From sequence record PV654397.1: 64,000 nt of DNA, one strand, 5' to 3'. The notes under the pieces were generated by a model. That model was not told where the DNA came from. It worked only from the letters and a program-made list of their open reading frames with translations, and did not search any database. The position numbers and the translations under genes are program-made. Each line of letters begins with the position of its first letter. Position 1 is the first letter of the stretch. This document shows, one piece after another, positions 2,891 to 62,834 of the stretch.

Positions 2891-5058
<2,168 letters not shown>

Positions 5059-5071
5059 AGGTTATATACTG

Positions 5072-6134
<1,063 letters not shown>

Positions 6135-14072: not shown

Positions 14073-14846
14073 TTATGTATTAATTTTATGACCCAATTTA
14101 TATGATAGCCAATGGATATCACTAATTCCTTCTTGTGAACCCAAGTGTAGTGTAAGTAGTTCATTCCATGTCAAAACTGTATTATTGTCAGGTGTATGAG
14201 CATTGTATCGAGCCATACCATCGGCACATGGGTCCAACGCGAGTATTTGATTACCCGTAATAGTTTTTGCTGGTGCTTCTAACCCCATCAATGAGCGTAT
14301 ATCATCCGATAGTATTTGAAATGCGGATACTGCTGCAACATTTAATGCAGTAATATTATCTTTGATAAAATCAACCGTTAAAGTTTGATAATATGAAATA
14401 TAGTTCTTATCAATATAATCCCATTTATCTTTAATGAAATCAAGTGTTAGTTTTTGGTATCTGGAAATTTCCGACATTACACCATCTCTAAATTCAACAA
14501 GGTCATTCCATTTGTCTTGAATAAAATCTTGTGTTAGTTTTTGATACTTAGCAACAGTATCCAGAAAGTTATCTTTGAAGTCATTCCATTTTTCCATAAT
14601 CAATTCCATTGGCATGACTACATATTGTGCAATAACATTTTTATCAAACCACTCCCACTTTTCTTTAAGAAAATCAGTTGTCATTGTTTGATATCGAGCT
14701 AACATATTAGGGTTCATTTTATCAAAATGTTTTTTTATAAAGTCTTGTGGGAGTTTTTGATAGCGAACAATCATATCCATATCAAGATCATCCCAAAATT
14801 CTTCTATGAATCCAATATCTATTGGACTACGATAGTCAACTTTCAT
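14073..14846 (-). CDS. Tryptophan-repeat protein (about 22-aa repeats) between nrdA and nrdB
   Basis: About 7 copies of [IV]xxYQ[KT]L[TP]xDFIxx[KH]W. Confidence 0.75.
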   Translation of the reverse strand: MKVDYRSPIDIGFIEEFWDDLDMDMIVRYQKLPQDFIKKHFDKMNPNMLARYQTMTTDFLKEKWEWFDKNVIAQYVVMPMELIMEKWNDFKDNFLDTVAKYQKLTQDFIQDKWNDLVEFRDGVMSEISRYQKLTLDFIKDKWDYIDKNYISYYQTLTVDFIKDNITALNVAAVSAFQILSDDIRSLMGLEAPAKTITGNQILALDPCADGMARYNAHTPDNNTVLTWNELLTLHLGSQEGISDIHWLSYKLGHKINT

Positions 14847-48458: not shown

Positions 48459-48487
48459 ATTGTATCACTACTTTAAAAGTTGTCTCA
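48459..48487 (-). promoter_or_regulatory. TGAGAC-N17-TACAAT promoter
   Basis: Upstream of the dsbA-like gene and DNA polymerase. Confidence 0.8.
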
Positions 48488-60458: not shown

Positions 60459-61295
60459 ATGGCAATGAACCCACTAGCTAAGTATACTAAAATTGAAGAA
60501 CTTGGTACAAAATTGGTCACAAATGGCGTGATTCCTTATAAAGAAGGAGTTCTTGGCTCTAAAGGTATCAAATGTGGCATTTGTGCTCGTAGTGCACGTG
60601 ATGAAATGACACTCAATACACCAGATATGCTTCTAAATGGTGATGCAATTGCTCGTGTTATTGAAAACTGCGTACCTAACGTACTTGATGCAGATGAACT
60701 TTATGTAAATGACGTAGAGCAACTACTTATCGCTATTAAAGTAGCTTCTAAAGAAGAATCATATGATATTAATGTGACATGCCCTGAATGTAACAAAGAA
60801 GGCCGTTTTGAGCGTAGCTTATCATATCTACTAGAAACAGCACAAACTTTCAGTGAAGTTCCTACTGTACAATTGGATAATGGACTAAGTTTAGAGTTTA
60901 GACCACTTACTTGGAAGGAATATTCTAACTTCGCAGAAAGAATGTTTACAGAACAACAAAAAACTAAATTCCTTGAAACTGCCGAAATGGAGCAGGAAGA
61001 AAAAGTTAAAGTGTTTGGTGAAGTATTTGAAAGTATGGCACAACTCAACTTTGATATGATCGCAGGAGTTATTGCTAAAGTAATTACTCCTGAAGGTGAT
61101 GAAGTAACTGAAAACGAATTCATTTCTGAATGGCTAGGCCAGCAGTCCAAAGGAACACTTAAAATAATTCGTGAAAAAATGGATGAAGTACTTGAAATTG
61201 GTGTTTCCCATACTATGGAAGTTGAATGCAGTGACTGTAATCATCAATGGGAAATTAATGGACTGAAATATGACCCAAGTCATTTTTTCGCATAA
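60459..61295 (+). CDS. Baseplate hub / tail assembly chaperone (T4 gp26-like)
   Basis: MNPLAKY, DEMTLNTPDMLLNG, DVEQLLIAIK, two CxxC; late promoter at 60417-23. Confidence 0.75.
   Translation: MAMNPLAKYTKIEELGTKLVTNGVIPYKEGVLGSKGIKCGICARSARDEMTLNTPDMLLNGDAIARVIENCVPNVLDADELYVNDVEQLLIAIKVASKEESYDINVTCPECNKEGRFERSLSYLLETAQTFSEVPTVQLDNGLSLEFRPLTWKEYSNFAERMFTEQQKTKFLETAEMEQEEKVKVFGEVFESMAQLNFDMIAGVIAKVITPEGDEVTENEFISEWLGQQSKGTLKIIREKMDEVLEIGVSHTMEVECSDCNHQWEINGLKYDPSHFFA
61283..61289 (+). other. -1 slippery heptamer T TTT TTC at the end of the chaperone gene
   Basis: CAT TTT TTC GCA TAA; the -1 frame runs into ATG 61295. Confidence 0.6.
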
Positions 61296-61504
61296 TGCTT
61301 CTCCACTCATCTCCTGAAGAAATACAAGAAGTACTTAAGGAATTTGAGTTGAATAAGTCAGATATTAAAACTGCATTAATGGAGTGTTCTGTTTATATGG
61401 AAAGTGTTGATTACGGAACACTACTTAATATGCCACTAATTGATAGAGACTTATTAGTTAAGTCTTTTAATAAGAAAATTAAAAAACAAAACGAGAAGCA
61501 CTAA
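61295..61504 (+). CDS. Small chaperone extension ORF (gp51/GT-like)
   Basis: 69 aa in the -1 frame; LLNMPLIDRDLL motif typical of tail chaperone second ORFs. Confidence 0.65.
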   Translation: MLLHSSPEEIQEVLKEFELNKSDIKTALMECSVYMESVDYGTLLNMPLIDRDLLVKSFNKKIKKQNEKH

Positions 61505-61512
61505 CTCACAAG

Positions 61513-61540
61513 GAGCCAGCACATTGTTGCTGGTTTTTTT
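61513..61540 (+). terminator. Intrinsic terminator
   Basis: AGCCAGCA/TGCTGGTT + T-run. Confidence 0.75.
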
Positions 61541-61760
61541 TGGTTTTTAAACTACAGAATTGATTGAATTGAATTATGAAAGGAATTAATTATTTTATAG
61601 TGAACTCATCTAACTCATTTCATTCGTTAGCTGAAGAATATTCGTTACTACGTAACTCATATTCATTTCTTATAATTAATTATAAAGAACTTTAAAAGAT
61701 TTAATACTTGACGGGATTTGTTGAAGACATTTTCATCCCCCCGCAGGGGAATGAAGACAA

Positions 61761-61785
61761 TAAAAAAGAGACAATTAAGTCTCTT
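61761..61785 (-). terminator. Intrinsic terminator of the ORF-less unit
   Basis: Minus strand AAGAGAC-ttaatt-GTCTCTT-TTTT. Confidence 0.7.
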
Positions 61786-62215
61786 AATTCTTGACGCTGA
61801 TGGTTTCAGCATTTATTGTATTGCGAATTTCTTAAAATTCATTAAGAACGAAAGCGGGTTGCTCTGTTTCTCTCTATCGCAGTCATGTGCAACGGTCGTC
61901 AGTCTTAATCATCCTGACACTCACCTGAAAGTCTATACAATCAAACTTCAGGCTGTTTATTAAATCACTTAATAAACTCCCTTAGCAAATCTGGTAAGGT
62001 GCGATCCTTATACATCTATCGAGGAACTCTCTGTATGCTTATCGGAGTTCTTTATTGAGCCGTGTCGCCGTGAGGGGTTCAAACTATGCCCACATCTAAC
62101 GGGTTTCTTCTGCTCATCGCACTGTTGAACTGCTCATCTGCCATCTACATTTTCGATAGGATCAGGTTCTAATTTATATGCATTTCTGCATTCAACAGGA
62201 TTGTCATCACTACAA
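61761..62215 (-). ncRNA. Candidate ~450-nt structured non-coding RNA
   Basis: Bounded by promoter 62221-49 and hairpin+U-tract 61761-85; no minus-strand ORF longer than about 21 aa seen; at least 8 hairpins. Confidence 0.55.
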
Positions 62216-62220
62216 TTAAC

Positions 62221-62249
62221 ATTATAGCACCAAATTCAAAAGTGTCTCA
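62221..62249 (-). promoter_or_regulatory. TGAGAC-N17-TATAAT promoter
   Basis: Exact match pointing into the ORF-less region. Confidence 0.8.
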
Positions 62250-62342
62250 CTATTATGATAAAAAAATTATAAAAAGTACATAATTCTTGAACATTGAAGT
62301 AACGCATAAATATTTTGATAAGAATTAGTTTAGTGGGGATTT

Positions 62343-62834
62343 ATGAAGAAAAGATTAAAAGATAGTAAAGAAGCTGCAAACTATCGAAATGAATTACTAA
62401 AGAAGCAAAAAGGAATTGATCCTATAATTAAGGAACCAATTACTAAGCCAGTACTTGATCACTATCACTTCGAGAATCAACACTGTCGTGAAGTTCTCCA
62501 GAACGAAGTGAACGCATGGGAAGGTAAAGTACAGAACAGCTTTAATCGCTATATGAAGCACTTAACCGATAAACCCTTATACGAGGTACTACGAAATCTT
62601 GCGGATTATCTGGAGCGTAATAACAGCATTCCTGAAGATGAGCAAGTTATACATCACACTGCACTAACAATCGATACGAATAAGTTTAAAAGGCTCCCAG
62701 CAGGACAACAGAATGCAATACTGGAAGAGTTAGGTGTTATCCCTGGTGCAAACAATGCTGCTCGTGTTAAGCAAGCCAGAAAGCTTATCAAGGAAGGCAA
62801 ATTAAATATGGTAGATGTAAAAAAAGGGAGCTAA
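62343..62834 (+). CDS. gp49: Recombination endonuclease VII-like Holliday junction resolvase
   Basis: KKQKGIDPI..VLDHYH..REVLQNEVNAWEGKV parallels T4 gp49; late promoter at 62306-12. Confidence 0.75.
   Translation: MKKRLKDSKEAANYRNELLKKQKGIDPIIKEPITKPVLDHYHFENQHCREVLQNEVNAWEGKVQNSFNRYMKHLTDKPLYEVLRNLADYLERNNSIPEDEQVIHHTALTIDTNKFKRLPAGQQNAILEELGVIPGANNAARVKQARKLIKEGKLNMVDVKKGS

Follow-up and report, generated by a model that had tools for sequence, protein, structure and literature searches.

A new family of large structured RNA genes in RaK2-like jumbo phages, also present in small islands of enterobacteria

The locus and its promoter-to-terminator unit

The stretch of DNA analysed (64,000 nucleotides of sequence record PV654397.1, hereafter the window) was 100% identical in this region to Escherichia phage WPEC5, and 92-100% identical to other Asteriusvirus-like coliphages (121Q, PBECO4, phAPEC6 and others). 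The unit examined lies on the minus strand at 61759-62249, between a baseplate-hub-like gene on one side and endonuclease VII, gp46 and gp47 on the other. Annotations leave the stretch empty or fill it with ORFs of 33-70 codons.

An extended -10 sigma-70 promoter was identified on the minus strand at 62221-62250 (GTGAGA/GAGACA, 16-18 nt spacer, TG-n-TATAAT; 10 of 12 matches), with the -35-like hexamer TGAGAC at 62244-62249 and the extended -10 element TGcTATAAT at 62221-62229. The start of the RNA was inferred from promoter geometry to lie near 62214. The same type of promoter, TG(A/G)(A/G)AC-N14-TGnTATAAT, heads almost all copies in other phages and at least 10 other minus-strand sites in the window. 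A terminator-like hairpin plus U-run was found at 61759-61785 (7-bp stem plus T-run at 61785-61766 and beyond), and is the probable 3' end of an RNA of roughly 455 nt, although the hairpin is present in only about half of the copies of the family.

The minus strand had no ORF of 25 aa or more between 61813 and 62342, and its three frames carried 10, 13 and 17 stops. The longest sense ORF had a median of 35 aa in 53 family members, and single-base indels inside the best-conserved blocks exclude coding. The G+C content was greater in the RNA (0.395-0.41) than in the flanking spacers (0.215-0.27) and in the window as a whole (0.362). Minimum free energy was -115.1 kcal/mol (z = -2.98), with 0 of 100 dinucleotide shuffles as stable.

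Rfam 15 gave 0 matches in the whole window at gathering thresholds, and with E up to 10 gave only sub-threshold hits on terminator hairpins (best 29.5 bits against a threshold of 99). No group I or group II intron, RNase P RNA or known ribozyme model matched, and the unit has its own promoter, lies between genes and has no flanking exons. ARAGORN found 0 tRNA or tmRNA genes in 61400-62400.

Evidence for transcription was weak. Sixteen studies had runs containing part of the stretch, seven of them on record as RNA, and contigs from four RNA libraries were compared with 4 kb of the window. In a plant metatranscriptome the only contig was 61870-62112, at 100% identity, with nothing else of the 4 kb covered. 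In two other libraries the core had the highest summed depth, with the flanking genes also covered. One contig crossed the promoter, and carry-over of DNA cannot be excluded; a control stretch from a structural gene was also present in RNA runs, with lower shares.

Distribution in phages and bacterial islands

Phage WPEC5 holds four copies, all on the minus strand, at about 71.6, 185.7 (the window copy), 270.2 and 320.4 kb, the other three being 69-79% identical to the window copy. Each has its own promoter of the same type and lies in a stretch without real genes. With blastn, the element was found in 72 phage records, at 291 places in all, and only in RaK2-like jumbo phages of Escherichia, Salmonella, Klebsiella, Erwinia, Yersinia, Serratia, Cronobacter, Pectobacterium and Xanthomonas. 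Homologues occurred in every RaK2-like jumbo phage checked, mostly 5 per genome and 50-95 kb apart. Whole-record searches gave five copies, always on one strand, in GAP32, BF, CBB, XbC2, Munch, EJP2, Kaldavass, Hallingskeid and XaC1, and three strong matches in RaK2. More distant jumbo phages searched with model R1 gave no match in PA5oct, whose four reported ORF-less ncRNAs (PMC7318152) showed no homology, or in XacN1, and one 24.7-bit match in Atu_ph07 with an unconvincing alignment.

Positions of the copies were syntenic. The orthologue of the window copy lies between endonuclease VII and the baseplate gene in Munch, GAP32, CBB, EJP2 and Hallingskeid, and another copy follows the phage sigma-factor gene in both WPEC5 and RaK2. 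In a tree, for which no support values were computed, copies grouped by position across genera, so the multi-copy state predates those genera. Gaps between neighbouring copies were 53-85 kb in GAP32, BF, XbC2 and CBB. For five random points on a circle, the probability that all gaps reach the observed minimum was 0.0002-0.02 in eight 5-copy genomes and 0.07 in the less regular XaC1; it was 0.11 in four-copy WPEC5. Because the genomes are syntenic, this counts as roughly one observation. In GAP32 the copies lie on the strand that carries nearly all genes, and GC skew followed transcription with no local inflection at the five copies, although skew may be a weak criterion in such a genome.

A degenerate pattern scan of species-representative genomes, checked with the covariance model, found full-length homologues (83-92 bits) in nine assemblies: Serratia fonticola, Serratia sp., Citrobacter amalonaticus, Enterobacter chinensis, Silvania, Buttiauxella, two Enterobacteriaceae assemblies and one short contig labelled Clostridium. 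Rfam gave no match at the island loci apart from an unrelated STnc450. The five whole genomes searched held one copy each. The RNA is rare, being found in 1 of 151 sampled Enterobacterales genomes (the query's own genome), in 2 of 5426 complete E. coli genomes and in no plasmid. A metagenome scan added 53 more loci and a divergent subfamily.

The bacterial copies sit in integrative islands of about 10-12 kb. In Citrobacter and Enterobacter, an island of about 10 kb between ppdD and nadC comprises a large serine recombinase, the RNA, a convergent cI-like S24 repressor, a cro-like gene, and then a DNA invertase and defence cargo (DarT-like with an ADP-ribosylglycohydrolase and a UvrD-like helicase, or an HEC-06/SspE-like protein). 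The Enterobacter-type islands also carry conserved proteins of 286 and 138 aa with no known function. A related 12-kb contig has a tyrosine integrase and nSTAND3/AbiGi cargo, the E. coli island sits at ffs, and the Serratia one has two ParB-like genes. One island contig was not circular by end overlap. No replication gene was recognised in the islands, and no island protein had a homologue in GAP32 or the window, so the RNA unit, including both boxes and the C/G hairpin described below, is the only part shared with the phages. Island RNAs fell in at least three places in the tree, which suggests repeated exchange.

Covarying helices and the conserved 3' module

From 65 unique copies, 53 that were less than 93% identical to one another were retained. 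Pair counts with slid and shuffled controls agreed with RNAalifold on the 5' domain, and with pair counts on a covariance-model alignment of 80 sequences of the 3' domain. At least 15 helices were kept by compensatory changes, including four or five pseudoknots.

The 5' domain (61977-62198) contains P1 (62191-62198 with 62122-62129; CUGUUGAA/UUCAACAG, 70% of cells paired in a noisy alignment, all 8 pairs changing on both sides), P1a, and the P2 hairpin with a conserved GAAAAUGUA loop (62138-62165; three segments, 89-92%). P3 (62131-62133 with 62119-62121; GCA/UGC, 100%) encloses the 3' strand of P1, which is a further crossing. The domain also contains P4 (62112-62116 with 62056-62060; UGAGC/GCUCA, 100%), P5 (CCGU/ACGG, 100%, nearly invariant), P6, the P7 hairpin (62024-62050; GAACUC/GAGUUC, 92%) and the P8 hairpin (61996-62009; AAGG/CCUU, 83%). 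Pseudoknot PKA (62063-62065 with 62012-62014; ACA/UGU) was paired in 97% of cells, and PKB (62036-62039 with 61984-61987; AGCA/UGCU), which joins the P7 loop with the segment before the invariant AAGGGAG (61977-61983), in 84%. A variable central hairpin (61955-61977) is replaced by a larger insert module in many other copies.

The 3' domain (61815-61952) begins with the P9 hairpin (61924-61952; CCUGAAGU/ACUUUCAG, 86%), whose loop (61935-61941) pairs with a segment 120 nt downstream (61815-61821) to form PKC (AUUGUAU/AUACAAU, 99%; 7 of 7 pairs covary). It also contains the P10 hairpin (61898-61918; GUCAG/CUGAC, 81%), P11 (61889-61893 with 61858-61862; GUUGC/GCAAC, 100%), which crosses P13 (61870-61874 with 61850-61854; GAGAG/CUUUC, 100%), P12 (61877-61881 with 61822-61826; UGCGA/UCGCA, 98%) and the P14 hairpin (61829-61848; UUCUUAA/UUAAGAA, 77%). 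For the helices of the model, which include P12-P14, 97.2% of cells were paired against 79.2% in shuffles and 36-48% when slid, 291 cells were changed on both sides against 79, and the covariation score was 0.576 against 0.211. Junction segments were invariant or nearly so: GAAAAUGUA, GAUGAG, ACCCGU, CGGCAAUGCGGC, AUAAAG, GAUAGA, AAGGGAG, CGACCGUUG, GAAAC and ACCCGC. An RNAalifold helix GUU/(G/A)AC inside R1 varied on one side only and conflicted with the fully covarying P11, and an RNAalifold pairing of UCC with GGG of AAGGGAG showed one-sided changes only.

Of nine stems proposed in a sequence-only reading of the locus, eight stand. Six were supported by covariation (CUGUUGAA/UUCAACAG, GAACUC/GAGUUC, UAAGG/CCUUA, CCUGAAG/UUUCAGG, GUCAG/CUGAC and UUCUUAA/UUAAGAA), and two (UGCA-GAAA-UGCA and GUUUAUUAA/UUAAUAAAC) lie at variable hairpin positions that are hairpins of other sequence, or larger inserts, in other copies. 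GCUGA/UCAGC was not supported (34% paired, no better than shuffles). The main proposal of that reading, a structured ncRNA of roughly 450 nt that is not a tRNA, tmRNA, RNase P RNA or intron, was supported by paralogues, orthologues, covariation and the absence of any Rfam or ARAGORN match. Besides the one stem, it requires correction in that the element belongs to a multi-copy family that also occurs in bacterial islands, and in that the conserved unit extends about 55 nt, and more weakly further, beyond the terminator at which that reading ended it.

Box 1 (CAUCAGCGUCAAG, 61790-61802) forms the loop and 3' strand of a short hairpin, P15, in most copies. It is followed by the terminator-like hairpin in about half of the copies and by a U-rich segment in all of them, and then by a conserved hairpin of a C-run and a G6-run (UUCAUUCCCC UGC GGGGGGAUGAA, 61732-61755). 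The G-run is invariant and the C arm takes C-to-U changes, with no two-sided covariation. Box 2 (CAAAUCCCGUCAAG, 61707-61720) comes next, and A+T was 0.68-0.73 in the 50 nt after it against 0.60-0.64 upstream, a modest enrichment. A short frame starting at GGGGGGAUG in box 2 and the G-run is not kept, because single-base indels shift it.

Box 1 (A-Y-C-A-N-CGUCA-R) and box 2 (A-Y-C-N-CGUCA-R) are direct repeats 50-101 nt apart that change together, copy by copy, in at least six ways. Among 53 copies, the states at Y in box 1 and box 2 were T/T in 31 and C/C in 22 (MI 0.98), and those at R were G/G in 29, A/A in 22 and mixed in 2 (MI 0.79). The core was CGUCA in both boxes in 50 copies, CUUCA in both in two RaK2 copies, and UGUCA in both in Munch copy 5. 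Outside this set, the core was UGUCA in both boxes of a metagenome relative of Munch copy 5, CGACA in both in a Serratia island, and CGAAG in both in a divergent metagenome subfamily. Copies within one phage differ from each other, so a single trans-acting protein per phage does not explain the coupling. The RNA holds no complementary segment of 7 nt or more, and only the 4-5 nt 5' strand of P15 is complementary to the boxes (GACGA/UCGUC, GAAGA/UCUUC, UUCG/CGAA). Reading the boxes as antisense -35 hexamers (TTGACG) fits many copies but not the CGAAG subfamily.

Possible functions and comparison with known systems

That the locus is a gene for a large structured RNA, one member of an undescribed family of multi-pseudoknotted non-coding RNA genes of about 450-630 nt, is close to certain. 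Host RNA polymerase can read it from the sigma-70 extended -10 promoter. Its mechanism is inferred, and the reading ranked first, an RNA-primed replication origin acting in cis, is tentative in the absence of any experiment on replication. An origin-priming transcript had also been suggested by the sequence-only reading. In this hypothesis the folded transcript ends at, or is processed near, box 1 and the U-run, and its 3' part hybridises to the template in the adjoining module of C/G hairpin, box 2 and A+T-rich DNA, which would explain why the two boxes must stay identical. The phage replisome, which in T4-type phages appears to start from R-loops without an initiator protein, would extend it. 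Five such modules on the main coding strand would divide a 350-kb genome into replicons of 55-85 kb, and an island carrying one module could then be copied by the enzymes of the phage or the host. It is the only reading that uses the even spacing, the single strand, the sequence-level conservation past the terminator, the A+T-rich end, the single copy in islands without recognisable replication genes and, above all, the identity of the two repeats. However, GC skew gave it no support, the A+T enrichment is modest, the spacing is one evolutionary event shared by syntenic genomes, WPEC5 and 121Q manage with 4 copies, and a fold this elaborate, with invariant junction nucleotides, is more typical of ribozymes and RNP RNAs than of known primer RNAs.

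Only slightly less favoured, and also no more than possible, is a trans-acting stable RNA made early and in quantity, which would fold, alone or with proteins and perhaps as a multimer, into a particle that binds or mimics a host component, for host takeover or as a decoy against a defence system. Islands would carry it for the same benefit or to interfere with incoming jumbo phages. The complex architecture, a strong promoter for each copy and a terminator for many as in stable RNA genes, the dosage offered by multiple copies, the greater depth of the core than of its flanks in RNA libraries, and its portability among islands with different integrases and defence cargo agree with this reading, but it does not explain the even spacing, the single strand, the conservation of the 3' module in sequence only or the coupled boxes, and no partner or target was identified.

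A ribozyme, or an RNA that processes itself or another nucleic acid, is unlikely. Its size and pseudoknot density are like those of large ribozymes, and the boxes could be two substrate sites read by the same active site or by the P15 5' strand, but the coupling extends to positions outside the P15 helix, and a GAUGAG...CGA resemblance to the hammerhead core fails on topology and on the conserved U-turn position, which is A, G or C, the flanking strand belonging to P2 and not to a stem with the post-cleavage strand. A cis-acting antitermination element of the HK022 put or lambda qut kind, by which polymerase would read the next 50-85 kb of co-directional genes, is similarly doubtful. Its layout of promoter, structured RNA, terminator and long co-directional gene arrays fits most copies, and the spacing is regular along a genome transcribed almost entirely in one direction, but the window copy and its orthologues run into convergent genes, the RNA converges on cI in islands, known antitermination RNAs are generally 70-200 nt, and the boxes are left unexplained. 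A selfish element (an ORF-less intron or MITE-like repeat) or a decayed protein gene is very unlikely: the element is repeated, HNH endonuclease genes lie within about 1 kb of two of the four WPEC5 copies, and it is shared between phages and islands, but the copies are old and stable at syntenic sites in different genera, and covariation shows selection on RNA pairing. Some probability remains for an explanation not considered here.

No description of the family was found in Rfam 15 or in the literature searched, whereas large ornate phage ncRNAs and RNA-defined origins, to either of which it may belong, are already known. It is possible, although less likely than not, that it represents a categorically new class of large functional RNA of mobile elements, whose fold and adjoining identical repeats carry out a nucleic-acid transaction not yet described in phages, such as primer translocation at multiple RNA-defined origins, or a new ribozyme or RNP, and which defence-carrying islands would copy in order to ride on, or block, jumbo phages. 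If it marks origins, it would give the first view of how 350-kb RaK2-like genomes start replication and would suggest a way for satellites to parasitise jumbo phages; if it is a trans-acting particle or a ribozyme, it adds a new RNA class in a model host. It lies in cultivable E. coli phages (121Q, PBECO4, WPEC5 and others), and in either case the spurious 30-70 aa hypothetical proteins annotated at these loci should be replaced by an ncRNA feature.

The HK022 put RNAs are also structured RNAs just downstream of a promoter and upstream of terminators, but they are typically about 70 nt with two stem-loops, and several copies here face convergent genes. Two short direct repeats that must stay identical within one molecule recall, by analogy only, hepadnavirus DR1/DR2 and retroviral R, although no reverse transcriptase is involved here and the repeats are 50-101 nt apart. 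The T4 origins oriF/oriG are probably likewise dispersed sites each starting with a promoter and followed by A+T-rich DNA, although the rise in A+T here is modest, and T4-related replication and recombination genes (gp46, gp47 and endonuclease VII) lie next door to the window copy; T4 origin transcripts are not known to need a conserved fold, while here a fold of about 430 nt is under strong selection. The ColE1 RNA II primer is probably also a folded transcript of about 500 nt from a sigma-70 promoter, with a G/C-run element and an A+T-rich start region in the downstream DNA with which it hybridises, although here the rise in A+T is modest and such hybridisation is only inferred. The present unit has no homology with it, is far more intricate, with pseudoknots, has no identified equivalent of the antisense RNA I, and is multi-copy in a lytic phage. 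There was no homology to the covariance models of ROOL, GOLLD, OLE or HEARO, which the RNA resembles only in kind (size, complexity and carriage by mobile elements). Large, intricately folded bacterial and phage RNAs are rare, and most (ROOL, GOLLD, OLE) still lack a function. ROOL and GOLLD RNAs in particular are probably comparable in having several hundred nucleotides, many covarying helices and pseudoknots, and carriage by phages and prophages; in the present family the hosts are Enterobacterales, and there are 4-5 dispersed, evenly spaced copies in most of the phage genomes searched and a conserved 3' module with coupled direct repeats.

Promoters, leaders and repeats

The promoter of the RNA belonged to a general class, (T/C)G(A/G)GAC(A)-N14-TGnTATAAT(G), which heads many genes on the minus strand of this structural-gene region, for example at 48487, 35718, 35641, 30468, 25615, 19192, 12715, 8782 and 2060 of the window. 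The phage also encodes its own sigma factor. The five copies of Xanthomonas phage XaC1 (loci L038, L074, L077, L081 and L084) lacked the TGnTATAAT promoter and shared a different upstream motif, CTGA(T/C)TGG..ACCCG.TTAGT. Four of the five XaC1 copies grouped together in the tree, which suggests homogenisation or recent duplication in that phage.

One orthologous group of copies (locus L005, the WPEC5 copy at 320 kb; L063, the GAP32 copy at 35 kb; and loci L075, L076, L095, L055, L073 and L054) had a hairpin plus U-run immediately after the -10 box and before the conserved RNA. It could be a leader terminator or attenuator, or the terminator of the upstream operon placed inside the leader of the RNA. 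In the window, a bidirectional terminator-like hairpin (61510-61539, and 61522-61498 on the minus strand) lay between the convergent 69-codon ORF (61295-61504) and the RNA unit. Four imperfect direct repeats of 49 nt (63-100% identical), with spacings of 87, 147 and 69 nt, were present at 14411-14762.

Optional module and divergent subfamily

In many copies, an optional module of about 30 nt (AAUUUU-GUACAAUAUAGAUCCGUCC-AAAAUU, or a GUACAAUGAAGUUGUAUCU version) was inserted in the central region, at the tip of P14, or at both (e.g., L004 1587-1720, and L165 3751-3960 on the Serratia fonticola chromosome). The module was inserted at either of two peripheral helices and always kept the helix continuous, and it looks like a movable tertiary-contact or protein-binding element. 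A divergent and G+C-richer subfamily, found in metagenome contigs (L233, L240 and L252), kept the 3' domain, GAUAGAC and UAAGGGAG, but had a much altered 5' domain and CGAAG boxes.

Copy number and neighbouring genes in the phages

Asteriusvirus-like phages close to the window (WPEC5, PV654397.1, and 121Q, KM507819.1) had four copies rather than five. The copy expected between about 72 and 186 kb was missing, and only a 16.8-bit match appeared at 93.1 kb. HNH endonuclease genes (PV654397.1 70182-70976 and 271579-272190; loci L010 and L008) lay within about 0.6-1 kb of two of the four WPEC5 copies. In phages XbC2 and Kaldavass (loci L033 and L037), ADP-ribosylglycohydrolase genes lay about 0.3-0.6 kb downstream of one RNA copy, and one also sat in the cargo of the Enterobacter island (L179 4279-5964), although this may be coincidence.

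Integrative islands

Adjacent to the island that carries the RNA in the Serratia fonticola chromosome (locus L165), and beside tilS, there were two rof (Rho-binding antiterminator) ORFs with identical scores (4775-5038 and 5227-5490), which may be a duplication made on integration. The islands in Citrobacter, Enterobacter, E. coli and a Logan contig (L178, L179, L198 and L318) formed a family of integrative islands of about 10-12 kb, with interchangeable integrases (serine or tyrosine), a cI/cro switch, an invertase and variable anti-phage cargo (DarT/ADP-ribosylglycohydrolase/UvrD, HEC-06/SspE-like, nSTAND3, AbiGi, DUF4238 and DUF4326/DUF488). Several relatives assembled as stand-alone contigs of 10-12 kb. 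The island family may be a satellite-like element.
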